Program-made: the position numbers and the translations under genes
In this document: one piece after another, positions 1-27,579 of the stretch
Layout: the number at the start of each line of letters is the position of its first letter
How positions within the stretch are numbered: the first letter of the stretch is position 1
Notes under the pieces: model-generated
Told to the model about the DNA's origin: nothing
Databases searched by the model: none
Seen by the model: only the letters and a program-made list of their open reading frames with translations
Assembly (NCBI GenBank): GCA_026936335.1
Contig: JAPMXV010000015.1
Coordinates: 248,001 to 312,000 of the forward strand
Length of the DNA: 64,000 nucleotides
DNA from: Mantamonas sphyraenae STR306
Taxonomy: Eukaryota; Protista; CRuMs
Direction: 5' to 3'

Positions 1-1000
1 AAGGGCGTTGGAGGGCGGTGGCGGGCAACTGCGTCAGCTGGATCTGCAGTGGCTGCGTTTGAACAGCGTGTTGCAGAGAAGGTTTCGGGAGAGTGGAGAA
101 TCGATGATGTTGGGATTGTGTGAGGCGTTGCAGGGACACACGCAGCTGGAGATGGTTGGATTGGGCATGGAGTTGGATACGAAGGAGGCAACAGCGCTGG
201 CGACGGCGTTGGAAGGGATGAAGGGTCTGAGAGAGGTGTGCTTGCCGCATGGAAGCACATCGGATGAAGGAATGATTGCAGTGGCGGATGTGCTGCGTGT
301 GCATCCGACAGTGGTGCAGGTGACGTTGGGATCGTACTTGAAGGAACGAGTGAGCGATGAGGTGGGTGATGCACTGTTGAGGATGGTAGAAGAGAATGAG
401 AGGTTGGTAGAGGCAATTGGACCTTGGGCAAAGAGAGATGTGAACATGGAGGTGCGGGAGAAAGTGTTGAAGGCAGTGGAAGGACGTGTGCGGCTGCAGC
501 GAATTGGGGGATATGGGGATGGTTTTGAAGCAGCGTTTCGGAAGAAGAAGAACAGTGCACAGAGATTGGTGAAGGCGGAGAGTGTGGATGCGGTGCGGGA
601 GGAGCTGGAGAGGGGATTGTGGGTGAACACGCGTGTGTTACGGGGATGGGAAGAAGGGGAGTGGGTGGTGGAGAATGTGTTGGTGAAGGGGAATGTGGAG
701 GTGTGGGAGGTGTTGGAGGAGTATGGGTTGCGGGAGGAGTTGACAGAGTGGGAGAAGGAGCAATGTGGGGAGATTGTGAGGGAGAAGGGTGTGTGGAGGA
801 AGGAATGGCATTGGGTGATGGGTGAGGAGGTGGATGAGAGGATAGAGGTGGCACTGGTGATGAACATGGAGGAGAGAGATGTGATGTTTGAGGCAGGTGG
901 GATGGAGGGGTATGTGGAAGAGACGGGGTGGGAGGGATGGGTGACACTGCCGGATGAGGTGATGGAGAGAGTGGTGAAGTGGTTGGGGGAGGGGTCATGA
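1..1000 (+). CDS. LRR (RNI-like)-ankyrin-like-C-terminal F-box-like family protein, 5' part outside window
   Basis: Near-identical to 1788-2784 (period ~1787 bp). LRR motifs (LRQLDLQWL, LREVCL) and the family tail WVTLPDEVMERVVKWL; stop TGA at 998-1000. Confidence 0.8.
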   Translation, partial: RALEGGGGQLRQLDLQWLRLNSVLQRRFRESGESMMLGLCEALQGHTQLEMVGLGMELDTKEATALATALEGMKGLREVCLPHGSTSDEGMIAVADVLRVHPTVVQVTLGSYLKERVSDEVGDALLRMVEENERLVEAIGPWAKRDVNMEVREKVLKAVEGRVRLQRIGGYGDGFEAAFRKKKNSAQRLVKAESVDAVREELERGLWVNTRVLRGWEEGEWVVENVLVKGNVEVWEVLEEYGLREELTEWEKEQCGEIVREKGVWRKEWHWVMGEEVDERIEVALVMNMEERDVMFEAGGMEGYVEETGWEGWVTLPDEVMERVVKWLGEGS

Positions 1001-1032
1001 TTGTGATGGTTGGCGATGTGTGCACCAACAAA

Positions 1033-2784: not shown

Positions 2785-2830
2785 GGTTGGGTGATGACGC
2801 TGGGGGAGACAATGAAACATTTGAGTCACA

Positions 2831-10200: not shown

Positions 10201-13200
10201 TTGATGTTCACAGATGCAAATGCCTTGAGGCTTTCGCGCTCGTCTTGTTCCTGGTCAACAAACCCGGAAAGACTGTTGGTGTGTTCCACGGCTTTGGTTT
10301 CCGCGGCCTGGGCACTCGCGATGTGATGCTTCATCATCGGCTGGTGGATTCTCAGCGCATTTTCCAGGTGAGCCCTTCCTTTCTTGGCGTTGTCTTTGAT
10401 GATCTTCTCATTCGCGCGGGCAAGGTTAAACTGTTCTTGATACTTTGACTTGTACAAATCCACCTTTGCCTTTTGGGCAGCCACACTGGCAGACGCAGTG
10501 GCAAGTCGCTGTTTGGTGTCCGCGAAAGCTTTTTCGTAATCGGACTTGGGCATGAGCTGCAGATCAATGATGCGCAGTTGCGTGGCGAGAGTGAGAGCCT
10601 GTTGCCGCAATTGATTCCGATGGATGAAAAGGAACATGGCCAACATCTTGTCTTCGCCTCGAGTCTTGGCAAAGGAAGCACGGAGGCCAGCAACAAAAGC
10701 ATTCCTTCGGGCAGCAAAAAGCTGCTTGCGGACCTTGAAGCGTCGATATTTCAACGCCCATGACCCGACTGCTCGAAGCACACGCTGGTCACTTCTGTCC
10801 ATCCATGATTTGTACTTGTACGAGTCATACTTTGGTTCCTTGCCTTGTCGTCCAGAGGCTTCGTAGTGAATTTCACGATTGGCAACCCCACCGCCAAACT
10901 GCTTCACATCAAAGTCGCATCCGGTGTCCTTTTCAATGCGAGTCCATCGGATGCCCACATTCTTCACCATACTGTCGACGGAGAAGAGACGGTTGCTGTC
11001 CAGGACCTGTTGCGTCCTCTCCGCCTGGGCGTCCAGGACCATCTCGTCGTCCAAGTCTTCCACTGAATCGTCCGTGGGCAACAACATCATGTCTTCCACC
11101 AATTGCGCATCGTCGTTGGCAGCATGCAGCATGTCGTGCATGGCCATGGCGCCCATCGTCTGCGGGGACGCCCAGCCCAGCACATCGTTGCTGTCGCGAA
11201 GCACAGGCATCATGGCAAGCAAGTCTGTTGGGATCATTTCCACCAAGCTGGGATCGGTGTGTCTGTTGACGTTGTTGTCGAGCAGGTCGGTTTCTTGCGC
11301 CGCCCGAGTGGTGACCTTGGCACGCTGGGTGGTGGCTTCGTTTTTGAGTCGCTGAAGCTGCTCACTGGTGGGCATGGGAAACTCCACTTCGTACAGTTTG
11401 TGTTTGTACTCAAGCAATTGCACGGATTCGTCGAGCACCGGTGTCCCGAGCACCTCGATTTCAACGCCAAACTTGGGGCGAAACCCTGCACTGATGGTGA
11501 GGGTGTTGCTCGCGGCCACTCCCTGGTTTTGTTCTTTCTCGTGCTCCTCGGGCTCGTTCAGCTTGATCACGTTGTTGTCGACGGACATACACGACGCAAC
11601 GCCTTGCGGCTGGAACTCGGCGACCACAAAGAACTCCATGGCAAAGTGTGGGCCGCTCACATCGTACAAACGAAACTTGAGCACAGGGCGCACGATGAAC
11701 TCCAGTTCGATGCCACCACAGGGTCGGAAGCCGTGTGGTGGCTTCAACGCGGGTGTGAGCTTCAGCGTCTGCACGGGCTTCAGCTGCACCTTTGTGCCCT
11801 TGAATGTGCCCTCAGCACCGATCGCAATGTTGCCGTTGATGGTTGCACCGAGTTTAAACTGGACGCCCGCTTTCATGGTGAAAGAGACGCCGACGTCGAG
11901 GTCGCCACGTGTGAACACCACCACGGTGACCGGACCGATCTGCACCTGGAACGTGTTGAACAGTTTGGTCAACACGGTCTTTTCGCGAGTCCAGTTCAGC
12001 GTACCCGTGACCTGGGCAAAGGCATCGACGTTGCCGTCGAGCTTGGCACCGACAGTGAACTTGCATCGCTTCAACTTGAACTTCTCCAGGCGGAGAGTCA
12101 GCGTGAAGGTCGGGGAGATCTCTGCCTTGCCTTCGAGGACTCGGATGATGAACTCCACAGACACGGTCACCTTGCCCTTGCCCTTGGTTTCGTCTCCCTT
12201 GTCCTTTTCTGCAATGGTGCCGGAGAAATCTTGTTCTTTGACCTCATACCCGACGCCGGGCAACGTTTCGTCCACGTTGAGCTCCGCCGTGCCTCCGTTC
12301 AGCATGTCAAGAGCAAACTTGGCCATTTGACCAGCAACCCGAACTGCAGTTGCGACGACCTCGCCTACCTGTTTCGCCACCTTGGCTACCACCTTGGCTG
12401 TTGCCTTGACCGCAGCCACGGCCGTTTTGGCCATTTCCTTGGCCTTGTTGATGTACTCGGAGGCCATGTTTTTGACCTTGTTGAGCACATTTTGTGTCAA
12501 ACGCACGGCTTGACTGACCAGATTGGTCATACTCTGCGCCAGACTGTTGATTGCGTTGCCAACCTTGTCGACCAAATGCTGGAATGAGTTCTTGACCGCG
12601 TTCCAGGCATTCTTCAACTGGTCGGAAAGCTCGTTGAAGCCCTGAGAGACGGTGCGAACGACACTGCTGATACCCTTCTTGGCTCTTCTCCATGTACGTC
12701 GGAACCACCCACGATCTTGATCGTGGACGTCGACCAGTGCTTCGTTGTCTTGGGGGTCCTCGGGTTCGTCTTCCAAATCTTCGTCCAAATCTTCGTCAAA
12801 ATCGTCGTCATCGCGCACATCGCTTTCTTGCTCTGAAGTCGGAAACTCATCTTCCAGCTCGTCATCCTTGCCGTCTTCGTCCGAGGATGATTGAAAAGCC
12901 GAGACGATGTCGAAATCGCTGGCGTCCACGTCGACTCCTTGGATGCGTGCCTCGGCGACACCTTGGGCCATCAAGCGCGCAGCGTCCAGCACGTACTCGC
13001 GGTGCTTGTTGAAGAACTGGCGAGCAGTTCCCGTCAGCTTGGCGCCGTACTCATCAGCCAGCGCACGCAGCTTGTGGCTGCTGGGGTCGACGTTTGCGAT
13101 CTGCTGCGCTGCCTCCGACACTCGTTTCAGGGCTTCGTGTGCAGATTGATCGTGCGCGTTTGCAGTTGCCACGTAGGTGTGGTCGTGCACCATGTCACGA

Positions 13201-14261
13201 AGCAGCTGCTGCTGCTCGTAGTTGCGTGCTGCCTTGCTGCGATCGCGCACAATGCCAGTCTGCACGTCCTTGATCAGATCAGACACGTCCGTGATCTCTA
13301 CGTGAGTGGTGGCTTCTTCCAGTGCGTCTTCCAGGTCGGCGTTGGCCACTCGCAGATGGTACGGCATGTCCTGTTTGTTGCAAGTCAGCTGCATACCCTT
13401 CTGCCATGGTTGAGCGCCATGGGGATGTTGCACGGCGGTGATCTTGTAGATGCCCGTGGCAATGGAAAACACAGAGCCAACCTCGATGTGTTGGCTGTGC
13501 GCCTGCATGAATTCACACGTGGCGCTGAAAACGCCGTCGCGCGCGTCGCCACCTTCCGGCAGCAGACCCTGTCGCACGAGATCCTCCATGGAACCAGCGT
13601 GCTTCATGAACGTGTACTCGTCCATGTCTTCCACCAAGCCGTTGGCCTGGTGGAATGGCATGTCTCCATCGACGTCGCTGACGTCTTCGTTTGGCGCCAC
13701 GTCAAACTCGTACTCGCCCGATGGGTTGGCATGTGCACGCTGCATGTGCTCCCCCATATGCTTCCCAATCATACTCAGAGTGCCTGAGGGAGAGAGAGCA
13801 TTCACGGGTTTCGCCACACGAGCCAGATGCTCGTGCAAGGGCGAAACGATCTGGAAGAACGCCGCATGTGGGACAACCTTTCCACGCACAAAGGTGCGCA
13901 CAAGCGATGTGCCCTGCAGCGACGCATGCACGGGGTGCTCTCTGAACACCCGATGCGTTGCGTCGGACACTGAGCCGTCGTCGAAGCCGGTGTTCTTCCG
14001 ATAGAGTTCCAGCGAAAAAAAGTCCTCTTCCGAAATTTTCTCGGGGTCCAGTACCACAGCTGGACCTGCGTTGGTCAGGGTGCCCTTCTGAAAGCGTGCA
14101 CGGAGATCCTTCTGAGATGATGGGGTGTCTAGTTGGGTGTCAGGAGCGTTGCGATTCGAGCGATGGACGCCAGGAGGGCCAATTGTCGGGAGAAATGTCC
14201 AGACGCGAATTTTGGATGGGAAAGTGCTGAATTGGTCACTCACATGGAACACCTGGTCCAC
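7236..14261 (-). CDS. Very large (~2340 aa) multidomain protein: acidic/amphipathic helical region, long beta-rich domain, coiled coil, Cys-rich repeats, 4x ~132-aa C-terminal repeat; 5' end uncertain
   Basis: Uninterrupted 7-kb ORF. Cys-rich repeats resemble NWxxSxDRxGxSxC...GLxRS...CC; tandem repeats lie at 7270-8870. The track start is GTG, so the true start is unresolved. Confidence 0.75.
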   Translation of the reverse strand: MDQVFHVSDQFSTFPSKIRVWTFLPTIGPPGVHRSNRNAPDTQLDTPSSQKDLRARFQKGTLTNAGPAVVLDPEKISEEDFFSLELYRKNTGFDDGSVSDATHRVFREHPVHASLQGTSLVRTFVRGKVVPHAAFFQIVSPLHEHLARVAKPVNALSPSGTLSMIGKHMGEHMQRAHANPSGEYEFDVAPNEDVSDVDGDMPFHQANGLVEDMDEYTFMKHAGSMEDLVRQGLLPEGGDARDGVFSATCEFMQAHSQHIEVGSVFSIATGIYKITAVQHPHGAQPWQKGMQLTCNKQDMPYHLRVANADLEDALEEATTHVEITDVSDLIKDVQTGIVRDRSKAARNYEQQQLLRDMVHDHTYVATANAHDQSAHEALKRVSEAAQQIANVDPSSHKLRALADEYGAKLTGTARQFFNKHREYVLDAARLMAQGVAEARIQGVDVDASDFDIVSAFQSSSDEDGKDDELEDEFPTSEQESDVRDDDDFDEDLDEDLEDEPEDPQDNEALVDVHDQDRGWFRRTWRRAKKGISSVVRTVSQGFNELSDQLKNAWNAVKNSFQHLVDKVGNAINSLAQSMTNLVSQAVRLTQNVLNKVKNMASEYINKAKEMAKTAVAAVKATAKVVAKVAKQVGEVVATAVRVAGQMAKFALDMLNGGTAELNVDETLPGVGYEVKEQDFSGTIAEKDKGDETKGKGKVTVSVEFIIRVLEGKAEISPTFTLTLRLEKFKLKRCKFTVGAKLDGNVDAFAQVTGTLNWTREKTVLTKLFNTFQVQIGPVTVVVFTRGDLDVGVSFTMKAGVQFKLGATINGNIAIGAEGTFKGTKVQLKPVQTLKLTPALKPPHGFRPCGGIELEFIVRPVLKFRLYDVSGPHFAMEFFVVAEFQPQGVASCMSVDNNVIKLNEPEEHEKEQNQGVAASNTLTISAGFRPKFGVEIEVLGTPVLDESVQLLEYKHKLYEVEFPMPTSEQLQRLKNEATTQRAKVTTRAAQETDLLDNNVNRHTDPSLVEMIPTDLLAMMPVLRDSNDVLGWASPQTMGAMAMHDMLHAANDDAQLVEDMMLLPTDDSVEDLDDEMVLDAQAERTQQVLDSNRLFSVDSMVKNVGIRWTRIEKDTGCDFDVKQFGGGVANREIHYEASGRQGKEPKYDSYKYKSWMDRSDQRVLRAVGSWALKYRRFKVRKQLFAARRNAFVAGLRASFAKTRGEDKMLAMFLFIHRNQLRQQALTLATQLRIIDLQLMPKSDYEKAFADTKQRLATASASVAAQKAKVDLYKSKYQEQFNLARANEKIIKDNAKKGRAHLENALRIHQPMMKHHIASAQAAETKAVEHTNSLSGFVDQEQDERESLKAFASVNIKRASDKGSRDAKAKLKAMFSTPKMLELRKDARKAQRIRGVAIADLMRLKTLHISEARRTRMRDMIRTMLVDTRKALDKYWNEVNHMLHIARQQGVHKVDGVLVVPSPTAREKQNRDAWARGAFKCYNSNWAASFDRGGLSRCKARSIVSGLTRSACNTLECLEGASCCSVHSKRNEYSLTGSFATKGFYGCSLPGYGIAGFKRVGWCSTLRCMTGLRCVDGLNENKCKNIEVSFTRKGTFSCPAGYGLKAIRRGSNGKNDGLSAVDQFKCCELQDRAPSEAQSTAPVTCKRGNWALSMDRAGVSECPRGYAVHSLFRSSTGKLQGLEWADCCTRNKLNVQTVEADWTKTLSKQGWSSCPAGYSISGFVRGNSNALVGIRKVKCTLGVYKDECKVLSRHMQSQGLYACPSGFGLNAIYRKVASGTMNDITKFKCCKYSAEKMSDPKRQGKMEKARATVRQIHGTVFNQLKRISKHTPSRNHHCHVNGKTEVQRLACLLTGYVGRKEVTSAVVYNSQTAGLFKKAMLAYYDYYKAIGKENVVGGKNHACFGKYHHQWNKRLACLAGSPTQTAEERREEERRKKMEKALATVRQIHDTVFNQLMQISKHTPSRNHHCHVNGKTEVQRLACLLTGYVGRKEVTSAVVYNSQTAGLFKKAMLAYYDYYKAIGKENVVGGKNHACFGKYRHQWNKRLACLAGSPTQTAEERREEERRKKMEKALATVRQTHGTVFNQLKRISKHTPSRNHHCHVNGKTEVQRLACLLTGYVGRKRVTSAVVYNSRTAKMFKHVMHVYYDYYKAIGKENVVGSKNHACFGKYRHQWNKRLACLAGSPTQTAEERRREERAVATVRQTHGMVFNQLMQISKHTPSRNHHCHVNGKTEVQRLACLLTGYVGRKEVTSAVVYNSQTAGLFKKAMLAYYDYYKAIGKENVVGGKNHACFGKYRHQWNKRLACLAGSPTQTAEERRREEERRKEERNKLLKRVWRGRTRW
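7270..8870. repeat. Coding tandem repeat, 4 units of 378-396 bp
   Basis: The unit ...QRLACLLTGYVGRKEVTSAVVYNSQTAGLFKKAMLAYYDYYKAIGKENVVGGKNHACFGKY... recurs with periods 378, 396 and 396 bp. Confidence 0.95.
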
Positions 14262-14990: not shown

Positions 14991-16423
14991 ATGAGTGAGT
15001 GATGCCCTGGGGCAGACAATGGAATGTTCGGGTTTGCAACACGCACGAAAACAGGTCTGCTGCGGGCATTGGAAGATGGAGTGGATGATGTGCGTGCATT
15101 CCTTGAAAAGCAACATGGTGCCGTGAGAGTGTGTTGGACAAACGTCACCAAAGAGCAACTGCAGACCATCCAAGAAGCGAGCAAAGGGTTGGAGGTGGAC
15201 GAACTCGAGCTGTGGGGCAAAAACGTGGAACTTTGCACGTTGATTGATTTCCTCACGTGCTTTTTTGCCAATCACAACGATGTCAAGGTGTTGCAGTTGA
15301 CGGACATGCAGTGGGGAGGAGGGAAAGCGGAAGACGAGCAGGCCCTCTTTCAAATGCTCGCCGCAATCGGCGGCTCACTGCGTGTGCTCACTGTGAACTT
15401 CAAGACGATTGCTGGTCAACGGGTCACAGTGTGGGAGGGACTGTTTGACGCCGTGGCCGCTGCTTGCCCCGCTCTGGAAGAGCTGGAAGTCGACAAATTC
15501 ACCCTTGACGCGTCACTGGGTCGCATGCTGCAAGCATGCACACGGTTACGAGCGTTGACACTTGGGAAAACAACAGATGGCAAGGATGATGAGGTGTCAC
15601 ACGAGCTGGGGGAAATGATATCGGCGAGTTCCCTGCGTTCGCTCACGGCATCGTGCCCCGTGACAAACATGGCAGGCATCCTGGCCTGTCCAACCCTGCG
15701 CGAGTTGACCCTAACATCCTTGGTGGCATCTGAAGACGAAGTGGCGGTGTTGGCAGAGGCATTGGAGGGCGGGGGGTCGCAGTTGCGTGTACTGGATTTG
15801 TCCGGCGTGCACGCGACCGCCAAGCTAGTTCTGCAAGCAGGAGCAAAGTTGGACCACGATGGACGCTCAGCGATGATGATGCTGGATGTGTGCAACGCGT
15901 TGCGAGGTCACACACAGTTGGACACACTTGGACTGGGGCTGCCTGTGGACGCAGAAGAGAGCTCGGTGTTGGCAGAAGCGATCACAGGCATGAAGGAGCT
16001 GCGAGAGTGTCGGCTTCCAATGGGAAGCACATCAACTGAAGGGTTGGGCCCGCTGGCCAATGCAATGCGAGTGCACCCGACGCTGGAGCGGGTCAATTGC
16101 GGTTCCATGGTTGTGGCAAACATGTCCATCGAGGTCAGCGACGCACTGTTGGGGATGGTGAGCGAGAACACGCGGCTGCAGTTTGTACTGGGGCCGTGGG
16201 TGCGTTCGCATGCCAACGAGTTTTTGCGCACGTATTGTGAACGTCAGCGCTCTGTGCACAGCGAAAATTTCAAACAAACTCCACACCAGAAGCCATCACA
16301 AACAGTCACATGCCCACGTCGGGAAAGCGGAGATCAGCATGCTACGGGCAGACCTCGCCACTGTTATGATCTTGTCACGTGGACGTCAAAAGCTGCCTGC
16401 TGCGCGGAGTCGCATCAAACACA

Positions 16424-17029
16424 ATGTCATCATCCAGCAGCCAAGATGACGCCGTAGATGGCATTGTTGAATCCATCTTAGGGCAGCAGGACGTCCTTGC
16501 TGCCAGATCGGTTCGTGTGGACGACTTACCGCCCAGCGTGCTACAGGTTGTTGCTGCGTTCGATGGTGACGCACAAGCGGTTGTCGAGGTTACGATGGAC
16601 GCCACTACCCAAACAAACAAGGTGTGGCGCCCCAGCAAGGCAGTGCTGCTCAAACACATGCGCAAAATGGCTGGAGAGGAGACTGGCGACCTGCCGAGTA
16701 CCGAGCATACCGAGCAAGCGTCTCCGAGCCATTCATTGAACGCCCCTGCCCTGGCAAGCAGGATTTCCGAGGTTGTCGACCCCGGAGGAGACATGGTGGT
16801 GGTCTCCGTGGATGGTGGTGTCCTGTGTAAGGGTTCAGCGACTGGCTGGCGCCATAACACAACGGGCAAACTGACGCCGCTGCACTTTTTCCGCCCCTCC
16901 ATCCACAGACAAGAGTATTTGGCTGCACGCAAACCTGGAGGAGAAAACACAAGAGCAAGTGCGCACGCACATCAAGGCCAAGGCCGACAAAGTCGCATGC
17001 GAGTTGACCGCGTTGCAAACGGAACTTGA
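16424..17029 (+). CDS. Probable N-terminal part of the Fanzor ORF (frameshifted) or a separate small ORF
   Basis: The ATG at 16424 (MSSSSSQDDAVDG) opens an ORF overlapping the long ORF, whose frame is open from ~16875 without an early ATG. A single-base shift at 16875-16960 would fuse them. Confidence 0.5.
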   Translation: MSSSSSQDDAVDGIVESILGQQDVLAARSVRVDDLPPSVLQVVAAFDGDAQAVVEVTMDATTQTNKVWRPSKAVLLKHMRKMAGEETGDLPSTEHTEQASPSHSLNAPALASRISEVVDPGGDMVVVSVDGGVLCKGSATGWRHNTTGKLTPLHFFRPSIHRQEYLAARKPGGENTRASAHAHQGQGRQSRMRVDRVANGT

Positions 17030-20000
17030 AGCGCAAGGTGTCAATGGCGCCGTGATGCTGTTCTTGGATCACCACGCTGCCCCCGAAGACTTTGCAGGCA
17101 TGCAAACCCACTTCAAGGACAAGGTGCATGTTCAGGATCTGTTGAGGCATATGAGCCGCTCCGCATCAAGCAAGAAGCCGCCCAGCTATGAGGTACGTGG
17201 AATTTTGCCCATGTTCTCTCATTTCCCTCGCTCACACCCATCCTCCACCCAGGACATGCTGTGGCAATGCAGGTCGTACCTGACGTATGGCTACTTGCAC
17301 GAGTACCTTTCTCAGTCCATCCAGGAGCACGACTGGGAGGCAACGGAGCCGGCGACCACTGGAGTGTTTTTGTCGCCAGCACCCAAAGAGCTGGACTCTT
17401 TGGAAGCCGAGCAGGCTATGTCTGAATTCTTCTCCGCTCGTTATGGCCATTATCAACACGTATTTGTCCATACCGACTCTGATGTGGCTCGCTTGGCGCC
17501 AGACATCGCAAAGTCATTTTGGAGCGTGCATCCCACAGCACCGCAAAGGGCATACGAGGTGACCCAGTTGACCAGATACAAGCTCAACACCTTCGCTCTG
17601 CTCACCGGGAAGCGCGACGGTATTCCCTTGCGCAACCCTCTCCTGGCGAGGTACTCCAATCTCCTATCCAAGGCGTGCGGCGTTGCGGGCACACAGCTTA
17701 TCGTACCGACGGGCTTCGAGCCCCCGAGCACAGGCAACGATCTCTCTGTCGTTCACATCGACTCTCTCAAGCAGCTGATCGAACACGTGTCGAAGTCATT
17801 CACGGTGAGGGAGAGCAAGCTGCTTGCCGACTACAAAGGCTTGACTGCAGCATCGAAGCGACTGCTCGAGTATGATCTGTATGACAGTGCAGTGTACATG
17901 GACTCTCCTTGGGTGAGTGTGCTTTGCAAGCAACGGAAGAGCGAGCGACTCCAAAACCAAACACTCAAGCCCAACGCCGCCCATTTGAAGGGTGTGTATC
18001 AGCTGATGGTGGAACAAAGCAAGGGCGACAAGGGTGCCATGGTCCGGGCTTTTGTGTCCTTCTTCACGCAGAGCCTGCGGAAAGAGTCGACCGCTCATCT
18101 GATCGATTCCTGGGCAACGTTCTCCAACGCTAAGCGCCAACTGACCTACGTAATCGTCCGACAAGCCTTCTCTGTCGTTGTGGATGAGAGTGGGAATGTG
18201 TTGGATGTTGTGATCGTCGATGGCGAGGAGCCCAAGCGTTTTCACGGGGTCAGTGGGCTGGATACAAGGAACCACAGGAAGACTGGGAGGGCACGGAAGA
18301 CACTGATGGTGTTGAACAACGCGTATGATGTGCTTCTGGATCTGGAAGATGCACACATCGATGCCCAGGACGCAGGCGGTGGTGTCGAGTTTGTGGTGGG
18401 AGACACGCCTCAAGGCGACAACCGCTCTCCCACGCACACATGCACCGTGCTTGGGGACGCCCAAGGGGTCGCAGAGGAGGCCAGGCACCTGTTGGAGCGT
18501 CTCAAAGCTTCAGTAAGCCTGCAAGTGAGGATTACGATCAAGTCGACCCGGCTGACGCACGTTTGCGTGATGGAACTTGAGTGCGGCGACGACGTCGTTT
18601 CAAGCGCCTTTTGCGATAGCATGGCCAACTACTGGGACACAGTCGACGCTGACCTCATTGAACAGGCCCTGTTGCTCCGCGACAAGATGTACACAGCCAC
18701 GTTGGACAAGGCCACGCGCAAGCGGCTCAAAGCAAACGCACGTGGCCATGGCCTGCTACCTCTGTACCACTCGCTGTTGTACAGAAAGCAGCGTCGCATG
18801 AGCGCCAGCGAGAAGCGCGAGGAGGGTCTGCGAACCCTTGAAGCAGACACGCTTGCATTGTTTGCCCGCCGCCTTTCCAAAATCGGCTCCAAAGACGTGC
18901 TCGCTGCCTTTGCAGAGGTCGGTGCATTGGACACAAAGACGGCACCGGATCACCTGTGTGGTCTGGTGGACTCGGACGTCTCCATCATCCCTCTGAAGGC
19001 CGATGTCGCCAGCAGCAAGGGCGCTGAATGGTCGGAAGAGACGAAGGGCGTTGTTGCGGAGCTTTCGGCTGCGACACACGCGTTTGCGAGTGCAACACTG
19101 GTGATGTTGAACGCATTTGTGCGTCTTCTTCCTTATCTCCTGCAGGACGCCATTCGCTCTGTTCCAAAGAAGCGTTCATCACGAGCTGGAGTCGCAGGAT
19201 CTGGAGTGCAGGTCGATTCTCCGCTGTGGACTCTGCAATTGGGCAAGCTGACGAGAGGTGTTGCGAACGCGCTGGCACAGAGCCACGATGGCCAGGTGTT
19301 GGTGCTTGACGTGCAGGCCGCAGGACGTGCAGCAGGGTGGAGTTCAAACGAGAACTGGTCGTTCAAGAAGATTCCGTCTGCGATCCATTTTGTGGATGAC
19401 CCCGCCGCTGCTGGTTGTGTGTTGTTGGTGGAAGCCTTGGACGAGAACACCAAGCGCGGTTTGGCTGCAGTCGGCAAACACGGAGAGAGCTGTGTGCAGG
19501 GCATGAAGGTGCTTGTCGAGCATGCAGCGCGTGGATGCGCGCTTCAGGCCCTATTGCCAGGAGCAGTCACTTGCTTGGATGTGGAGGCAGCGAGCCAGGT
19601 GATTGCAGACCACCTCAACGACAACGACAAGAAAACCACAAAGCCAAGGTCGGCAGCTATGGTGCGCAAGCGTCTGAAGGATCTGCGTGTGACGCAGATT
19701 TTTGAGTCCGACGGCTCCCCAGTTGTTTCCTCCGCCTCCGCCTCATCGTCCTCATCCTCATCCTCATCCTCATCCTCATCCTCATCCTCATCCTCATCCT
19801 CATCCTCATCCTCATCCTCATCCTCATCCTCATCCTCATCCTCAGCCACAGGCACATCTGATGGAGCCGCGGCAGATTCCGACACCGAGGCAGATGCAGA
19901 CACCGAGGCTCCGACAGTGGCAGCCCTGCAGGCGTTGAAGACAATTCGCTTCACCGCCGACCATCTGTATGCGGATGGCGACGTGAAAGACCTTGTGCAT

Positions 20001-21470
20001 GCTCAGAAAAATTTGAAAGAAGATGAAGAGCTGCGGAACCTGCCACGACAGGTCAACGCAGAGGCGCAGGTCATGTACACGCCGACAGACTACTGGAACA
20101 TCCTCCGCACATGGAAGAGCACCGGAAATGCCACCGTGGACAGGCTTCAGGCATGGGCAACCCAATGCAAACAGCTTGCGGATCTCAACCAGATTGTCCA
20201 GGAAGAGGAGGACACGCTGTGTGCCAACATCGACTACTTGCAAAAGCTTGTTGAGGCATGGTTATCATGTAACAGCCTCGCTCAGCCTCATGCTAGGACA
20301 ACAGCACCACCCCTGATGTCACTCATCTTCACGCCGGATTTGCTTTCTGCGTCTCCCAGCCAGCTGTCTGGCTATTGGGGCAGTGCTGCGCGACACATGG
20401 GCACGTGGAAGTACTGCCGTCACAAGCAGGCACCGTTGTTGTCCCTCCTGAGCCTGGTGGAACCGTACCTGGATTCCAAGGTACGCGGCAGCTTTTTCTT
20501 TGACGAGCTCTTCGAGCCCTCGCAACGCAGCATCGCGTACCTGCTGCCATTTCTGGAAAAGTCGCACAACGCCGCTGTCATCCTGACAGCATCTGTGCGC
20601 GTGCTGGGACGGAAACGAACGGGACGCCTGCTGCGTCTTTGCGGCCACAGCGCCGTACACGTGACTGAGATCCTCAACACACTTCCCCGGGAGCAGGCAT
20701 TTGCTCCAAAGGGAGCGCTGTTTGAGAGACAGGTGCTGTTCCGCAAGACCCCAAAGGCATGGCTGAACGATGCGGTGATGTTGATCCTTGACGGCGGTAA
20801 AACCAAGAACCATGCAGCGCTCTTTGCCCCTTCTGCTGAGCCCGAGTTCCGACGAGGTTCACGTGTGTACGGCACGCTCGTGCGCGTGTCCACTACCTCG
20901 TACAGGGGAGAGTTGGTGCAACGACGTGGGCACAAGCGCACAAGCGACGAACACACGCCAGCATCCAAGGCTCAATCAGCTCGCTGCAAGAATGCGCAGG
21001 CTCAGCGATGCTACACGGCGGCAAAGTCATATGCAAAGACGTTGCACAGGAAGCATGTGCTGACGGTGGCGGGGCCACAAACCTGGACGGGAGGCAACTT
21101 CACCTCCTGGACCTCGAAGCTTGCATTGCACACCCTGGTGCTCATTGTTTCCGAGTACAACACCACGAAGAACCACTCACGGTGCCATGGAGAAGTTCAG
21201 TACTGCCATGCCTTGGGCAGCACGAAGAAATCGATGGGACGCTGGGTTGGTTGCAAAGAGTGTTGCGCTCAACACGGGTGTCGCAGTGCCACGGCAGGGG
21301 CACGTGCAGCGGTTCAGGCGTGTGCAGGGGCCCACAGCATGCGAGTCATCAATCGAGATGTCAACGCTCTGCTCAATATCGCGATCTTGGCCGTGTGCCT
21401 CCTCACGCAAGGAAGACGACCAGCTGGCCTGCAGCGAATCCACAAGGACGACGACGACAACGACAACTGA
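16959..21470 (+). CDS. Fanzor (eukaryotic TnpB-like RNA-guided RuvC endonuclease) with very long N-terminal extension
   Basis: RuvC-I LILDGG (D at 20790), shifted RuvC-II VLIVSEYNTTK (E at 21153), zinc finger HSRC...CKEC, and RuvC-III INRDVNALLNI (D at 21357), all within the last ~230 aa. Confidence 0.85.
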   Translation: MRTHIKAKADKVACELTALQTELEAQGVNGAVMLFLDHHAAPEDFAGMQTHFKDKVHVQDLLRHMSRSASSKKPPSYEVRGILPMFSHFPRSHPSSTQDMLWQCRSYLTYGYLHEYLSQSIQEHDWEATEPATTGVFLSPAPKELDSLEAEQAMSEFFSARYGHYQHVFVHTDSDVARLAPDIAKSFWSVHPTAPQRAYEVTQLTRYKLNTFALLTGKRDGIPLRNPLLARYSNLLSKACGVAGTQLIVPTGFEPPSTGNDLSVVHIDSLKQLIEHVSKSFTVRESKLLADYKGLTAASKRLLEYDLYDSAVYMDSPWVSVLCKQRKSERLQNQTLKPNAAHLKGVYQLMVEQSKGDKGAMVRAFVSFFTQSLRKESTAHLIDSWATFSNAKRQLTYVIVRQAFSVVVDESGNVLDVVIVDGEEPKRFHGVSGLDTRNHRKTGRARKTLMVLNNAYDVLLDLEDAHIDAQDAGGGVEFVVGDTPQGDNRSPTHTCTVLGDAQGVAEEARHLLERLKASVSLQVRITIKSTRLTHVCVMELECGDDVVSSAFCDSMANYWDTVDADLIEQALLLRDKMYTATLDKATRKRLKANARGHGLLPLYHSLLYRKQRRMSASEKREEGLRTLEADTLALFARRLSKIGSKDVLAAFAEVGALDTKTAPDHLCGLVDSDVSIIPLKADVASSKGAEWSEETKGVVAELSAATHAFASATLVMLNAFVRLLPYLLQDAIRSVPKKRSSRAGVAGSGVQVDSPLWTLQLGKLTRGVANALAQSHDGQVLVLDVQAAGRAAGWSSNENWSFKKIPSAIHFVDDPAAAGCVLLVEALDENTKRGLAAVGKHGESCVQGMKVLVEHAARGCALQALLPGAVTCLDVEAASQVIADHLNDNDKKTTKPRSAAMVRKRLKDLRVTQIFESDGSPVVSSASASSSSSSSSSSSSSSSSSSSSSSSSSSSSSSSSSSATGTSDGAAADSDTEADADTEAPTVAALQALKTIRFTADHLYADGDVKDLVHAQKNLKEDEELRNLPRQVNAEAQVMYTPTDYWNILRTWKSTGNATVDRLQAWATQCKQLADLNQIVQEEEDTLCANIDYLQKLVEAWLSCNSLAQPHARTTAPPLMSLIFTPDLLSASPSQLSGYWGSAARHMGTWKYCRHKQAPLLSLLSLVEPYLDSKVRGSFFFDELFEPSQRSIAYLLPFLEKSHNAAVILTASVRVLGRKRTGRLLRLCGHSAVHVTEILNTLPREQAFAPKGALFERQVLFRKTPKAWLNDAVMLILDGGKTKNHAALFAPSAEPEFRRGSRVYGTLVRVSTTSYRGELVQRRGHKRTSDEHTPASKAQSARCKNAQAQRCYTAAKSYAKTLHRKHVLTVAGPQTWTGGNFTSWTSKLALHTLVLIVSEYNTTKNHSRCHGEVQYCHALGSTKKSMGRWVGCKECCAQHGCRSATAGARAAVQACAGAHSMRVINRDVNALLNIAILAVCLLTQGRRPAGLQRIHKDDDDNDN
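19743..19843 (+). repeat. (TCATCC)n hexanucleotide repeat encoding poly-Ser inside the Fanzor ORF
   Basis: Directly visible; the reading frame is preserved. Confidence 0.95.
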
Positions 21471-21625
21471 CCATCATCGACAACGACTGGTACTTATCTA
21501 GGACCGGCGTAATACGCTAACGCTGCCACAGGAATCACGTTTCTAGGAGAGCGAGTTTTTTCTTGACTTTGTGGGAACGTGTGCACAGCGCGCAGCGCAC
21601 AGCAATACGTTGAGCGAGAGGCAAG
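21471..21625 (+). ncRNA. Candidate omegaRNA: scaffold to the element right end plus a guide from the flank (~21606-21625)
   Basis: 135 nt lie between the Fanzor stop and the right end. There is a hairpin GCGT-AAT-ACGC near 21507-21517 and a long G:U-rich stem-loop at 21536-21581 (cacgtttctaggag...ctttgtgggaacgtg). The position matches TnpB/Fanzor omegaRNAs; boundaries are inferred. Confidence 0.55.
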
Positions 21626-22107
21626 GAGGTGCGATTGCAGAGCATGGCTCAGTGGGAACAGAGAGCACGCACAGAGGTTGGTAAAGGCGGAGAGTGTGGA
21701 GGTGGTGCGCGAGGAGCTAGAGAGGGGCCTGGGAGTGAACACGCGGATGGTGGGAGCGCGGCAAAGGGAATGGGTGGTGGAGAATGTGTTGGTGAAGGGC
21801 GACTTTGATATCTGGGAGGTGTTGGAGGAGTATGGGTTGAGGGAGGAGTTGACAGAGTGGGAGAGGGAGCAATGTGGGGACGTGGTGAGCCAGAGGGGTG
21901 TGTGGAGGAAGGAATGGCATTGGTTGATGGGTGAGGAGGTGGATGAGAGGATAGAGGTGGCACTGGTGATGAATGGGGAGGAGAGAGATGTGATGTTTGA
22001 GGCAGGTGGGATGGAGGGGTATGTGGAAGAGACAGGGTGGGAGGGATGGGTGACACTGCCGGATGAGGTGATGGAAAGGGTGGTGCGTTGGGTCGCCCAC
22101 ACGAAGC

Positions 22108-23823
22108 ATGTTTGAGGAGGAAAATGTACTCGCATGTGTGGACAACGAGGACAAAGAGGGCCTGGAGCAGCTTCTGTTGACCAGTGGCGGCCTTTGGATG
22201 GAAGACATTGATCTGGAAGGCCCCAGGATGCAGGTTCTTGCGGAGCTTGCACGCGGGTTGCCGTGTGTGGGGCTGGTGGCATTCAGCAGCGTGACCTTCG
22301 ACGACGACGTGTCGTGGTATGCTGGGTTGGAATCCTTGTTGATGGATGCGCCAGAGGCGTGCATGTTGGTCATGCAGAACATGGGTAGTGAATCGCTTTC
22401 AAATGAGGCGGCGCTTTCCCTGGCACACGCTCTGCAACACGGCAAACACCAACTGTCGATCGTGGATTTCTCCAGTACGATGTCAATCGATGATGCAGCA
22501 TTTGGGCACATGGCCAACGCACTGACAACGTGGCCCTCGTGGCAGCTGGAGAGCCTGGAGCTCGGTGGAACGGACATCTCGGACGAGAGTGTGCCTGCAC
22601 TGAAGCAGGTGATTGCCCATTCGACGCATCTGCACTCATTGGATGTGTCTCGCACCAACTTGTCTCTGACGGGACTGGAGAAGCTGGGCAAAGCGATGGG
22701 TGGCTCCGGGTCGCTGCGGAAAGTGACGGTGGGCCGGCAGCACATGCGCAGGGTGGATGGTGAGCCAACGATGGGCGCTGTGGTGGATCGCATGTTGGGA
22801 GGGGTCGCTGTGCGAGAGGTGCAACTGTGTGGGATGTTGGACAGGGTGGCGGAGAAGGACCTTGCGCGTGCGTTGCTGGATCGGGGTGAGCATCTCCACA
22901 TGCTGAAAATGGACAAGATGCAGCTGGAAAGGGCAGAGAGTGAGGAGAAAGGGATGGATTTGATGGATGCGGTGGTGCAGATGCCCCATCTGGACACATT
23001 GCATGTGGATGCGATTCGTATGTCAAACACGGCGCTGGAGAGGCTTGCCAGTGGGTTGAACGAGGGCATGCGAGAACTGCGTGAGCTGGAGGTGCTGAAC
23101 GCGAGTCAGGTGGGGATGTGTGCGATTTGTTTTGCGGTTGCCACGCATCCGGGTCTGATTGGGTTTACGATTGCAGGGGCGACAATGCAAATAGCCGACG
23201 ATGTGGAACGGGCACTGGAGCACATGGTGAGCACGAACAAGCGACTGCAGTACGTTGCAGGGCCGTCTCTGGTGAATCCGAATGATAAAATGCGGATGGA
23301 GGAAGTGCTGCGCGGAAGCAAGACCATGCTCAGGGCGAACCTCGGCGTGGGGAGAACAACTGAGTTTGCACACAATGTGTCACGGTGCAACGACCTGTTT
23401 GAGGCCATGAAGGTGGAGGACCTGGAAGGGATGCGGGAGATCCTGGACAGCGGTGTGTGGGTGAACACGTTGATGGGGCACCTGTCAACAAATTCACTGA
23501 GCCAGTCAACAATACGTCATGGCAAAACAGAAGCGTGGAGGGTGTTGGAGGAGTATGGGTTGCGGGAGGAGTTGAACGAGCGGGAGCGGGAGCGATGCGA
23601 AGCTGTGGCACTGCAGACGAGGAGATGGGACCCGGCGTGGCATTGGGTGATGCGTGAGGAGGTGGATGAGACGATAGAGGTGGCACTGGTGATGAACATG
23701 GAGGAGAGAGATGTGATGTTTGAGGCGGGTGGGATGGAGGGGTACGAATCGACTGGGGAGTGGTGGACACTGCCGGACGAGGTGATGGAGAGGGTGTTGA
23801 GGTGGCTGGCGGTGGGATCGTGA
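22108..23823 (+). CDS. LRR-ankyrin-like-F-box-like family protein
   Basis: RNI-like LRRs (LESLELGGTDISDESVPAL), an ankyrin-like segment (MREILDSGVWVN) and the family tail. ATG overlaps the upstream ORF by 8 nt. Confidence 0.8.
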   Translation: MFEEENVLACVDNEDKEGLEQLLLTSGGLWMEDIDLEGPRMQVLAELARGLPCVGLVAFSSVTFDDDVSWYAGLESLLMDAPEACMLVMQNMGSESLSNEAALSLAHALQHGKHQLSIVDFSSTMSIDDAAFGHMANALTTWPSWQLESLELGGTDISDESVPALKQVIAHSTHLHSLDVSRTNLSLTGLEKLGKAMGGSGSLRKVTVGRQHMRRVDGEPTMGAVVDRMLGGVAVREVQLCGMLDRVAEKDLARALLDRGEHLHMLKMDKMQLERAESEEKGMDLMDAVVQMPHLDTLHVDAIRMSNTALERLASGLNEGMRELRELEVLNASQVGMCAICFAVATHPGLIGFTIAGATMQIADDVERALEHMVSTNKRLQYVAGPSLVNPNDKMRMEEVLRGSKTMLRANLGVGRTTEFAHNVSRCNDLFEAMKVEDLEGMREILDSGVWVNTLMGHLSTNSLSQSTIRHGKTEAWRVLEEYGLREELNERERERCEAVALQTRRWDPAWHWVMREEVDETIEVALVMNMEERDVMFEAGGMEGYESTGEWWTLPDEVMERVLRWLAVGS

Positions 23824-23849
23824 TGGTTGGCGATGTGTGCACCAACAAA

Positions 23850-25592
23850 ATGGCTCTTCTTCCCCGGGTGCCGACCGCTCTACAGCGAGCGTTGGAAGGC
23901 AGTGTGGAGGATGTGCGAGAGGAATTGATGAAGACTGTATTTCAGGTGAATGTGAAATGGACCAATGTCTCAGAGGACGAGCTGGCCAAGCTGCAGGAAG
24001 CGTGCGAGGGAGTGGAAGTGCGAGCGTTGTCGCTGAACTGTGGCAAAGTGCCGATGGGGTCTGTGGGGGCATTTCTGGAGGGGTGCATGGCACAGCAGAG
24101 GCACTTGCAGGTGTTGAAGTTGTACCAATTGGCCCAGGGAGAAGGAGAGGGCCAGGATGGACCGGCAAAGTTGTTCCAAGCGCTGGAGCTGGTGGGAGGG
24201 GCGCTTCGTGAGTTGATAGTGAAGCGGTCACTGGATGGATGGAGAATGCGATCGAGGAATTCGTGGAAGAACGCATTGATTTATGCGGTGGCCAATGGGT
24301 GCCCGATGCTGGAGGACTTGCGGCTGGACGAATGCCTGAGTGCGGAGGACCTTGGACGGGTGCTGCACTCTTGCACGAGGCTGAAAGTGTTGCGCCTGAC
24401 AAGGTTCGGATTGGAGAGTGAGGAGGAGACGCTGGAGATGGCACGGCTGATCGGGGAGAGCAGGTTGCGTGTGGTGAAGCTTTCCTTGCAGAAATCGTGG
24501 TCAAACCTTGGCACCATCGTCGGGGCGATGCTTGGATGTGGGACACTGAGGGAATTGGTTCTCAATGGCACTTTGACGGAAGAAGAAGCAGTGAAAGGGC
24601 TGGGAAGGGCGATGGAGGGTGGTGGTGGGCAACTGCGTCAGCTGGATATCCACAGGCTGCGTTTGAACAGCGTGTTGCAGAGAAGGTTTCGGGAGAGGGG
24701 AGAATCGATGATGTTGGGATTGTGTGAGGCGTTGCAGGGACACACGCAGCTGGAGATGGTTGGATTGGGCATGGAGTTGGATACAAAGGAGGCAACAGCG
24801 CTGGCGACGGCGTTGGAAGGGATGAAGGGTCTGCGAGAGGTGTGCTTACCGCATGGAAGCACATCGGATGAAGGAATGATTGCAGTGGCGGATGTGCTGC
24901 GTGTGCATCCGACAGTGGTGCAGGTGACGTTGGGATCGTACCTTGAGGAGCGAGTGAGCGATGAGGTGGGTGATGCACTGTTGAGGATGGTAGGAGAGAA
25001 TGAGAGCTTGTTAGAGGCAATTGGACCTTGGGAGGCAAGGGATGTGAACATGGAGGTGCAGGAGAAAGTGTTGAAGGCAGTGGAAGGGCACGTGCGGCTG
25101 CAGCGAATTGGGGGATTTTGGTATGGTGTTGATGCGGCGTTTGCAAAGCAAAAGAACAGTGCAAAGAGATTGGTGAAGGCGGAGAGTGTGGATGCGGTGC
25201 GGGAGGAATTGGAGAGGGGATTGTGGGTGAACACGCGTGTGTTACGGGGATTGGAAGAAGGGGAGTGGGTGGTGGAGAATGTGTTGGTGAAAGGGGATGT
25301 GGAGGTGTGGGAGGTGCTTGAGGAGTATGGGTTGCGGGAGGAGTTGACAGAGTGGGAAAAGGAGCAATGTGGGGAGATTGTGAGGGAGAGGGGTGTGTGG
25401 AGGAAGGAGTGGCATTGGTTGATGGGTGAGGAGGTGGATGAGAGGATAGAGGTGGCACTGGTGATGAACATGGAGGAGAGAGATGTGATGTTTGAGGCAG
25501 GTGGGATGGAGGGGTACGAATCGACTGGAGAGTGGTGGACACTGCCGGATGAGGTGATGGACAGGGTGGTATGGTGGCTGGGGATGGAGTAG
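23850..25592 (+). CDS. LRR-ankyrin-like-F-box-like family protein, close paralog of 1033-2784
   Basis: Highly similar to 1033-2784 but with the GYESTGEWWT tail variant. An in-frame ATG at 23823 overlaps the upstream stop (TGATG). Confidence 0.8.
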   Translation: MALLPRVPTALQRALEGSVEDVREELMKTVFQVNVKWTNVSEDELAKLQEACEGVEVRALSLNCGKVPMGSVGAFLEGCMAQQRHLQVLKLYQLAQGEGEGQDGPAKLFQALELVGGALRELIVKRSLDGWRMRSRNSWKNALIYAVANGCPMLEDLRLDECLSAEDLGRVLHSCTRLKVLRLTRFGLESEEETLEMARLIGESRLRVVKLSLQKSWSNLGTIVGAMLGCGTLRELVLNGTLTEEEAVKGLGRAMEGGGGQLRQLDIHRLRLNSVLQRRFRERGESMMLGLCEALQGHTQLEMVGLGMELDTKEATALATALEGMKGLREVCLPHGSTSDEGMIAVADVLRVHPTVVQVTLGSYLEERVSDEVGDALLRMVGENESLLEAIGPWEARDVNMEVQEKVLKAVEGHVRLQRIGGFWYGVDAAFAKQKNSAKRLVKAESVDAVREELERGLWVNTRVLRGLEEGEWVVENVLVKGDVEVWEVLEEYGLREELTEWEKEQCGEIVRERGVWRKEWHWLMGEEVDERIEVALVMNMEERDVMFEAGGMEGYESTGEWWTLPDEVMDRVVWWLGME

Positions 25593-25626
25593 GGTTGGGT
25601 GATGGTGCGATAGCGGACGCAAATCA

Positions 25627-25794
25627 AGCGTCGATCAAGCGATCGAAGTCGCACTCGTGATCAACAACAGCGAACGCGACCTCCTCTTTGATGCAGGCGA
25701 CATGCAATTGTACACACCCACTGCACTGTGGATTACCATTCCCGATGAGATCCTGCACCGCATCATCCGTCACCTCACCTCACTCCAACAATGA
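25627..25794 (+). pseudogene. Orphan C-terminal tail of the family (no start codon)
   Basis: Translates as SVDQAIEVALVINNSERDLLFDAGDMQLYTPTALWITIPDEILHRIIRHLTSLQQ*, with an in-frame stop upstream at 25600-25602. Confidence 0.75.
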
Positions 25795-25815
25795 ACCCAA
25801 CCAAAACCTCACCCA

Positions 25816-27579
25816 ATGGATGACGACTCCGAACCCGCCGTCCTCGCCCTAGCTCGCTCAGGGGACACTGAGAAAGTGCGCAAGCACTTCTCCATGCACG
25901 GTGGCATCATTCTTGACCACACACACTTGTCAACCGAGGACCTGGACATCCTGGCAACCGCGTGCTCCGACGACGATTCCTCCCTCCGCCGTCTCGAACT
26001 CATCCGCATCACCACAGACACCACCTCATCCCTGTTTACATTCCTGGCTCGCATCATTGCCGGCGCACCCAAGCTTCACACCATCCACCTGGACGTGGAG
26101 GCCCACTTGAACGTTGAGGACGACGACGAAACACAGGAGTGTCTCGAACGCCTTGTCACCGCGTTGCAACAACACCCCACGGGCATCCTCCAGTTCTCTG
26201 TCTTTAATTCGGCCATGTTGACCCCGGATGTGTTTGACGGGCTCGTCACAGGCCTGACCACAGCCAACCACTGTGCGTTGGAAGAGCTCCAGCTCCAACT
26301 GGTGCCACTGGGAGACAAGAGCGTGCCTGCACTCGTCACCCTCCTTCAGAGCATGCCGTACCTGGCTTCTCTTACCATGAGCTCGTGTGGCCTTACGCTG
26401 GGAGGCAAGGTGGAGCTGGCAGAGGCAATCGGCAAACACTGCCCTCGCCTGAGCAAACTCATCTGGTCACTGGACCACGAGCGGCATCCAAATGACAAAC
26501 ACTTGGTTGAAGACGGCACAAAGAGGGTGCTCCAGGCCATCCTGCAGGCACCCAGACTCATCAACCTCGACGTTTCCGACATCCCGCACACCGTCCACGA
26601 CGAGTCTCTTGTTTCTGAGGCACTGGCACAGCACGGACACAACCTGCGCCTTTTGTGTCTGCGTTCCTTGAGGGGAAGGGTTGCCAGGACAAGGTCGAGG
26701 GACACTGGCAACATGCTGGTGAAGGCACTCCCGCACCTGACCAAACTGCACACGTTGCACCTCAACGGCAAACCATGGACGTTCAATGCATCTCTTGCGC
26801 TGTGTGATGCACTCCAACACATGTCCGAGCTGCGTGTGCTCTCATGTCCTCGAATCGTCCACCCGGACACACGCATCACCCTCGCAGACGCCATACGCAC
26901 ACATCCGGCCCTGCGCGACGTCTCCACCGAGTGGCTGGACGTCGACTCGTGGGAAGCCGACGTTGCAGACGCTGTCAATCGCATGCTCTCTGAAAACACT
27001 CGCCTGCAAGCCCTGCCGCTGGGCAGAAAGTGCCCTCCAAGAAACCCCAAACTGCAATCCTTGGTCGACTCCATCCACAGTGTCAATCTGCAAACCCTTT
27101 TCAACTACCCACAACCCAAAGTGATCAAGGACAATGTCAACCGCGTGCACGCGCTGTTCAGCGCACTCGCAAAGGGAGACATCGACGCCATGCGTGCCAT
27201 CCTCGACAAAGGCGTCTCGGTGAACGTCATGCGAGGCAGCCACAGGTCTCTCTTTGAGGCTGCCATCATGCGCAACCAGGAACAGGCATGGCTCCTGCTG
27301 GAAGAGCACGGCCTTCGCGACGAGCTCACATCCTTTGAGCGGGAACAATGCCTGCACAGAATGCAGACGCAGGGCAGGTGGAACCCCGTGTGGCATTGGT
27401 TGCTCGATGACGACGTGGACGAGAGGATAGAGGTGGCACTGGTCATGAACGGGATTGAGAGAGATGTGATGTTTGAGGCGGGTGGGATGGAGGAATACGA
27501 ATCGACTGGAGAATGGTGGACACTGCCAGACGAGGTTATGGACAGGGTGTTGAAGTGGTTGGGCAATGGACAATCATGA
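25816..27579 (+). CDS. LRR-ankyrin-F-box-like family protein
   Basis: LRRs, an ankyrin repeat (LFSALAKGDIDAMRAILDKGVSVN) and the family tail. Confidence 0.8.
   Translation: MDDDSEPAVLALARSGDTEKVRKHFSMHGGIILDHTHLSTEDLDILATACSDDDSSLRRLELIRITTDTTSSLFTFLARIIAGAPKLHTIHLDVEAHLNVEDDDETQECLERLVTALQQHPTGILQFSVFNSAMLTPDVFDGLVTGLTTANHCALEELQLQLVPLGDKSVPALVTLLQSMPYLASLTMSSCGLTLGGKVELAEAIGKHCPRLSKLIWSLDHERHPNDKHLVEDGTKRVLQAILQAPRLINLDVSDIPHTVHDESLVSEALAQHGHNLRLLCLRSLRGRVARTRSRDTGNMLVKALPHLTKLHTLHLNGKPWTFNASLALCDALQHMSELRVLSCPRIVHPDTRITLADAIRTHPALRDVSTEWLDVDSWEADVADAVNRMLSENTRLQALPLGRKCPPRNPKLQSLVDSIHSVNLQTLFNYPQPKVIKDNVNRVHALFSALAKGDIDAMRAILDKGVSVNVMRGSHRSLFEAAIMRNQEQAWLLLEEHGLRDELTSFEREQCLHRMQTQGRWNPVWHWLLDDDVDERIEVALVMNGIERDVMFEAGGMEEYESTGEWWTLPDEVMDRVLKWLGNGQS

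Follow-up and report, generated by a model that had tools for sequence, protein, structure and literature searches.

A giant, probably spliced Fanzor of Mantamonas sphyraenae whose N-terminal extension resembles a FEN1/XPG-type 5′ nuclease

Introduction

Fanzors cut DNA under RNA guidance and are relatives of CRISPR-Cas12. Those described are compact proteins of about 600 aa (PMC10530073). Within a 64,000-nucleotide stretch of the Mantamonas sphyraenae STR306 genome (contig JAPMXV010000015.1, positions 248,001 to 312,000 of the forward strand; hereafter the window), a preliminary description noticed a Fanzor preceded by more than 900 aa, or by about 1,100 aa if an upstream ORF were joined, and proposed that this front part was an extra functional module, such as a transposase or recombinase, fused through a poly-Ser linker. 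The locus raises the question of whether this front part really belongs to the Fanzor, what it resembles, and what it might do for the element that carries it. M. sphyraenae, a deep-branching protist, is a diploid in which most genes have a single exon (PMC10492846), and our genome searches covered its 25,061,354 bases in 78 contigs.

Results

A predicted three-exon gene of 1,634 aa

On the plus strand, the ORF that holds the Fanzor (16959–21470) encodes 1,503 aa from a GTG codon, or 1,531 aa from stop to stop, and is preceded and overlapped by an ORF starting at the ATG at 16424. When the copies of this gene in the genome were compared, the length of the first interval between conserved coding blocks was 82 nt in the window versus 104 nt in copy L005, and that of the second was 68 nt in L005 (where the unspliced frame is broken) and 69 nt in L006. 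Because these lengths vary by frame-breaking amounts while exon 2 remains constant, the apparent frameshift is best read as an intron, and a genuine frameshift between both ORFs was rejected since introns account for all five full-length copies. We infer a gene of three exons and 1,634 aa, in which the upstream ORF is joined in frame via an 82-nt GT–AG intron (Table 1). Spliced models of the five full-length copies (70–97% nt identity) were free of stops and predicted proteins of 1,629–1,643 aa. This joined model was used for length, dN/dS and motif spacing, and either single exons or natural read-through frames served as queries for searches and fold prediction.

The predicted protein consists of approximately 1,055 aa ahead of the Ser run, the poly-Ser tract itself, and then approximately 540 aa (541) with RuvC-like motifs, in agreement with the sizes given in the preliminary description for the case that the upstream ORF is joined. 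Its reading of the Ser run as the linker of a fusion fared less well. The tract is specific to this family: in the portions covered, sister families either have no low-complexity tract or have one whose distance from RuvC differs. Because its position is not common to other families we rejected it as a proven fusion junction. Moreover, a weak profile match (probability 80) indicated that in some families a homologous segment may precede the Ser-rich tract, hinting that the domain boundary of the extension may differ from the Ser run.

Table 1. Positions of the gene, its predicted domains and the element ends in the window
Feature	Coordinates	Strand	Basis or remark
Host LRR gene, 5′ part	15024..16232	+	3′ part continues at 21608
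Left target-site duplication TA	16233..16234	+	Same dinucleotide at both sides in 6/6 copies
Left imperfect terminal inverted repeat, 25 bp, with inner CTGTGCAC core	16235..16259	+	Copy alignment
5′ non-coding stretch, conserved, probably holding promoter and end sequences	16260..16423	+	Kept down to the 70% copy and in L004
Exon 1, 134 codons + 1 nt, ending with D130 (16811–16813)	16424..16826	+	ATG conserved in 5 copies
Predicted intron 1, 82 nt, GTAAG...CTGAC...CACAG	16827..16908	+	Ends conserved, interior diverged with frame-breaking indels
FEN1/XPG-like (PIN) 5′ nuclease domain (putative), residues ~122–360, over three exons	16787..17645	+	Order and spacing of motifs
Exon 2, 284 nt, carrying D188	16909..17192	+	Same length in all five full-length copies
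Predicted intron 2, 60 nt, in frame in the window copy	17193..17252	+	GT/AG conserved
Exon 3, 1,405 codons + stop	17253..21470	+	Open in all full-length copies
Middle region without family match, residues ~361–1,059 (~700 aa)	17646..19742	+	dN/dS 0.17–0.43
Poly-Ser tract, residues 1060–1093	19743..19844	+	Pure Ser run; length differs by whole codons between copies
Fanzor/TnpB-type body, RuvC triad and variant Cys/His zinc-finger region	19845..21470	+	Motifs, profile, AF2 model
Candidate omega-RNA, comprising 3′ UTR, right inverted repeat and a flank-derived guide	21471..21625	+	Placed by analogy with SpuFz1 (PMC10432273)
Right imperfect terminal inverted repeat	21581..21605	+	Copy alignment
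Right target-site duplication TA	21606..21607	+	Copy alignment

The gene lies in a mobile element with mariner-type ends

Alignment of six copies placed the ends of a 5,371-bp mobile element at 16235 and 21605 (+), interrupting an LRR gene of the host. Removal of the element together with one TA restored the host frame, yielding a 572-aa LRR ORF that is 50% identical over residues 2–567 to the paralog at window position 979. Besides the window copy, the genome carries five others, which are 97, 95 (internally deleted), 92, 81 and 70% identical to it in nt sequence. The duplicated dinucleotide is TA in five of the six copies and TG at both sides in L004, and TA duplication and terminal inverted repeats are both as in IS630/Tc1/mariner elements. 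Fanzors in TA-duplicating mariner-type elements (PMC3627910) and IS630-linked TnpBs (PMC10691335) are known from earlier work. Among the right flanks (L001–L006; n = 6), a C adjoins the duplication in all six and CA in five, and the six left flanks have nothing in common but the duplicated dinucleotide, with no TAM visible there. This flank bias sits to the right of the element, opposite the usual TAM side.

Copy L004 (C35:264233–267777), flanked by the TG duplication, has lost exons 1 and 2 and the PIN-like domain through an internal deletion, and constitutes a natural PIN-less variant that retains the first 175 bp at its left side as well as an open frame of 1,175 aa including RuvC. Identity between L003 and L001 is ~95% in the front part and 76% after the Ser run, where L003 resembles L005; such patchy identity along the gene (L001 versus L002, L003 and L005) suggests recombination or conversion between copies. 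The surrounding single-exon LRR genes form a tandem array (window 15024–29306 and 8–4564), in which the C-terminal tail is near-constant and stop and start codons overlap. Another conspicuous ORF (window 7236–14261, minus strand; 2,341 aa) contains Cys-rich repeats with a recently quadruplicated unit of ~132 aa, and revealed no Pfam match above the cut-off.

The 135 nt past the stop codon, together with the flank, might form an omega-RNA. This candidate displays conserved stems, with two-sided change in 2 pairs and a fold z of –1.75, and yielded no match in Rfam. An omega-RNA at the left end was rejected because no fold signal was present, and the 5′ non-coding region showed no significant fold on either strand. 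In a related locus with a broken frame of 433 aa (L032), a tandem duplication of ~185 nt lies 3′ of the stop codon, possibly as a repeat of the omega-RNA.

The C-terminal part is predicted to adopt a Cas12/TnpB/Fanzor-type RuvC fold

The RuvC triad is intact, with D1409 (20790), E1530 (21153) and D1598 (21357), and these residues are invariant in 16 divergent loci. The Fanzor/TnpB motif D-X(125,275)-[TS][TS]-XX-zinc finger-X(5,50)-RD could be traced via E1530-x-x-T-T and R-D1598, its D, E, T, R and D being invariant across the 16 loci and the first finger cysteine often being His. A profile of the C-terminal part matched the mimivirus Fanzor2 chain of PDB 9b0l (E 2.8e-5), and a Foldseek search with the AF2 model ranked SpuFz first, albeit weakly (E 0.013). 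Structural alignment of this model gave VIA Z values of 14.1 for CasPhi3, 9.0 for TnpB, 8.2 for GtFz and 8.1 for ApmFz2, and the modelled fold of this part is of the Cas12/TnpB/Fanzor RuvC type, in agreement with the Fanzor originally noticed after the Ser run. The model reached a pTM of 0.33 and displayed no clear WED barrel; AF2 was confident on a helical block immediately before the Ser run. Compared with the 81% and 70% copies, dN/dS was 0.08–0.18 across the Fanzor body and 0.08–0.10 in RuvC. No alignable outside homolog of the giant Fanzor was found in protein searches or among viral and metagenome contigs, and its genomic context (terminal inverted repeats, TA, mariner) is Fanzor1-like.

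Sister giant Fanzors lie beside a separate transposase gene

A direct search with the C-terminal part revealed 24 related loci in the genome, and a profile search approximately 37, mostly situated in open frames of 1,300–2,250 aa and falling into families that are just 17–45% identical. These giant Fanzor loci represent at least eight divergent families, at least four of which show signs of a second nuclease domain. Of the 17 full matches to DDE_3 (IS630/Tc1/mariner) in the genome, nine share the strand of a giant Fanzor and lie 2–10 kb upstream of it, and the six copies of the window family have none. The absence of a DDE gene from the window family and its presence by nine sister Fanzors suggest that the window element is non-autonomous, with mobilisation in trans as the simplest reading. 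Because a separate DDE_3 transposase accompanies sister giant Fanzors, the extension is probably not a transposase. The earlier idea that it couples targeting to insertion likewise found no support, given the TA duplications, the inverted ends and these separate genes. The right ends of the families have a common CG-rich subterminal signature, mostly followed by TA.

Probable autonomous elements combining DDE_3 with a giant Fanzor are found on C44 (two), C2, C11 (two), C57, C59, C43 and C46. Elsewhere in the window (5296–5303), the sequence TA-TT-AA-TA, which occurs a single time within the 64 kb (with 0 expected), introduces an in-frame stop codon into a receptor-like gene (LRR and multi-pass membrane, minus strand), and it looks like an excision footprint of the window element family.

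The N-terminal extension is under purifying selection and carries FEN1/XPG-like motifs

Every segment of the extension displayed a dN/dS of 0.17–0.43 against the 81% and 70% copies, pointing to purifying selection, and exon 1 gave 0.29–0.40 against the diverged copies. The start of exon 3 matched two loci of a family that is ~17% identical in the C-terminal part (E 1e-11 and 6e-5), 3.5 kb upstream of RuvC and in frames long enough for both, and the region conserved with the 17%-identical families begins at the central PIN-like motif. The extra module of the preliminary description is conserved, lies in the same frame as the Fanzor and is probably functional; its proposed identity as a transposase or recombinase was not upheld, and the one part of it that could be recognised is FEN1/XPG-like.

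As had been remarked, no family could be recognised: the extension matched none in Pfam, NCBIfam or PHROGs, no homologs were found among 5.8 billion and 1.84 billion proteins, and neither a search of the N-terminus against PDB sequences nor phage tblastn yielded a match. AF2 modelling of the N-terminal 641 aa followed by three fold searches likewise gave none. A match to MyrA was rejected as weak and far below the cut-off.

Within residues 126–351 of the spliced model, seven acidic residues nevertheless follow the order of the FEN1/XPG active site (D130, D188, E280, E282, D304, D306 and D351; 7/7), with a spacing of 58/92/2/22/2/45 versus medians of 53/72/2/19/2/59 in reference proteins. All seven are invariant, against 43% of acidic residues overall (p about 0.003). 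A motif pattern that fits approximately half of the reference FEN1 proteins occurred in all five spliced models and in 1 of 20,000 shuffles, a figure that is optimistic because the pattern was widened after inspection of the sequence. Genome-wide, the E-x-[DE]...D-x-D pattern gave 20 matches versus 3 for a control, including three host XPG genes, five copies of the window family and four loci that belong to two further families of giant Fanzors. At three of these four loci the motif is in frame with RuvC and precedes the match on the RuvC side by 1,216–1,739 codons. On the basis of coordinates and short matches to the motif, the central motif is thus in frame in two sister families, while in a third the region is matched by sequence. 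Further PIN-like motifs (E-A-D-T...D-S-D) for which no RuvC was detected lie at C29:78937, C29:98555 and C69:265093, one of them 7 kb downstream of a DDE_3 gene (C29:71522), and possibly belong to more divergent families.

The named ESM neighbours of the extension all belonged to the PIN clan (XRN_N, DDX60 PIN, Pox G5 and XPG_N), at values of 0.84–0.85 that count as a lead (<0.9). The XPG_N and XPG_I HMMs matched none of the giant ORFs, and the host's own XPG family members are intact elsewhere. With hhalign, the motifs aligned in register with archaeal and viral FEN1 at a score of 12, which is not significant relative to shuffles (mean 13), and comparison with bacterial and phage 5′ nucleases gave no result. 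AF2 modelling of the PIN part from five close sequences remained below a pLDDT of 50 and lacked the exon 1 strand. On balance, we are fairly confident that the extension harbours a FEN/XPG-like domain, and because neither XPG profile matched we file it as FEN/XPG-like and not as a family member.

The middle region gave no match to any family, homolog, ESM atlas entry or fold, and probably serves as a scaffold or in nucleic-acid binding, partly as an enlarged REC.

Discussion

Judged by its sequence, the window gene looks like a giant Fanzor of approximately 2.5 times the usual size, the extra front part of which resembles a FEN1/XPG-type 5′ nuclease and not a transposase. Such a protein may not only cleave its target but also trim the resulting ends, allowing the element to be copied back in. 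In the sequence of events that we envisage, a separate DDE transposase supplied by sister elements would act in trans on the inverted ends and TA target to move the element, and the right-end omega-RNA would, as in SpuFz1, take its guide from the flank. The RuvC domain would then cut the empty site, either after excision or on the homologous chromosome, and the FEN1/XPG-like domain would remove 5′ flaps or resect 5′ ends. The trimmed ends, being 3′ single strands, might disfavour end joining and promote homologous repair with the element-bearing copy as template, which would restore the element or spread it by homing. We consider the chances roughly even that this reading, of a non-autonomous IS630/Tc1/mariner-type transposon with one spliced two-nuclease Fanzor that makes a guided cut and then trims 5′ ends for homing, is correct. 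More tentatively, the protein could be an RNA-guided ‘cut and resect’ enzyme, in which one polypeptide breaks DNA and processes the 5′ ends, thereby forcing homologous repair and homing into the empty allele, and the founder of a modular giant Fanzor lineage with many divergent families in one genome.

With the same architecture, the PIN-like domain could instead act on RNA or RNA:DNA, either trimming the 5′ end of the omega-RNA from the mRNA or resolving the R-loop for turnover. XRN_N and DDX60 PIN are indeed among the ESM neighbours, RNA primers are substrates of FEN-like enzymes such as T4 RNase H (database annotation), and the candidate omega-RNA sits in the 3′ end of the mRNA and would need release. 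However, small Fanzors function without such a domain (PMC10432273) and the motifs, among them an H3TH-like G..D element, are laid out more as in FEN1/XPG; we regard this as unlikely. Accretion in the manner of Cas12a, which would make most of the extension an enlarged REC/WED and its acidic motifs a relic or a coincidence, is improbable, since none of the seven acidic residues varies (p about 0.003, given that 43% of acidic residues are invariant), other families also show the motif in frame, and the conserved exon 1 supplies the first Asp. This is so even though the PIN profile and structure tests were not significant, the poly-Ser tract is not a shared boundary, AF2 was confident on the helical block directly before it, and a REC insertion of ~900 aa is known in Cas12a (PMC10432273). 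The separation of the two domains by ~700 aa and a Ser tract would suit captured cargo with a role of its own (e.g. in repairing the excision site), which would be either fused but mechanistically uncoupled or produced separately, but at least three very divergent families have the PIN motif and RuvC within a single open frame, which makes such cargo quite improbable. Finally, a divergent transposase or recombinase mediating RNA-guided insertion is very improbable, because the TA duplication, the inverted ends and the TA-TT-AA-TA footprint are in keeping with Tc1/mariner chemistry, a separate DDE_3 gene is retained beside an equally long Fanzor in sister elements and no DDE or recombinase family matched, despite six window-family copies without a transposase gene, ~700 aa that match no family, and asymmetric insertion sites (C after the right duplication in 6/6).

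Among known systems, Fanzor1 of Spu-1 (SpuFz1 of Spizellomyces punctatus; PMC3627910, PMC10432273) is similar in being a lone Fanzor gene between short inverted repeats, with a TA duplication, no transposase, and an omega-RNA (a candidate one here) between stop codon and right end. It differs in its size of 633 aa, versus 1,634 aa with N-terminal FEN/XPG-like motifs here, and in the TAM of Spu-1, which is CATA to the left of the element, whereas a CA is conserved beyond the right duplication here. Mariner-borne Fanzor1 (PGv-1, PUl-1; PMC3627910) and IS630-linked TnpB (PMC10691335) have a transposase gene beside the nuclease, as do the probable autonomous sister elements in this genome. PGv-1 also carries a second nuclease (GIY-YIG), but as a separate ORF of another family, whereas the putative second nuclease here is fused and PIN-like. 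Like FEN1, XPG, EXO1 and GEN1 (PF00752, PF00867), the extension has seven acidic residues in order and at similar spacing, with hydrophobic strands before the Asp residues; unlike them, it is fused to a Fanzor, and it neither matched their HMMs nor reached significance in profile comparison.

Large Cas12 effectors (Cas12a, b, i, j) share the RuvC fold (Z 10–14) and a similar overall size, but the giant Fanzor is transposon-borne and has no CRISPR array. To our knowledge, no large Cas12 effector has a natural 5′ nuclease domain. Academ transposons present an XPG-like domain in a eukaryotic DNA transposon, alongside the transposase, but differ from the giant Fanzor in lacking an RNA-guided nuclease and in their duplication. 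Among the mostly open-access papers covered by our search, none was found on a Fanzor fused to a 5′ nuclease or on a Fanzor in Mantamonas, and Fanzor survey papers searched by term revealed no natural fusion of this kind.

Fanzor surveys miss giant, spliced and highly diverged members in poorly sampled eukaryotes. The Fanzors described so far have a single nuclease. If the putative second nuclease of the giant Fanzor is active, it would directly show that the purpose of the break is repair steered toward homing, and the protein would be a natural counterpart of the engineered Cas-exonuclease fusions.
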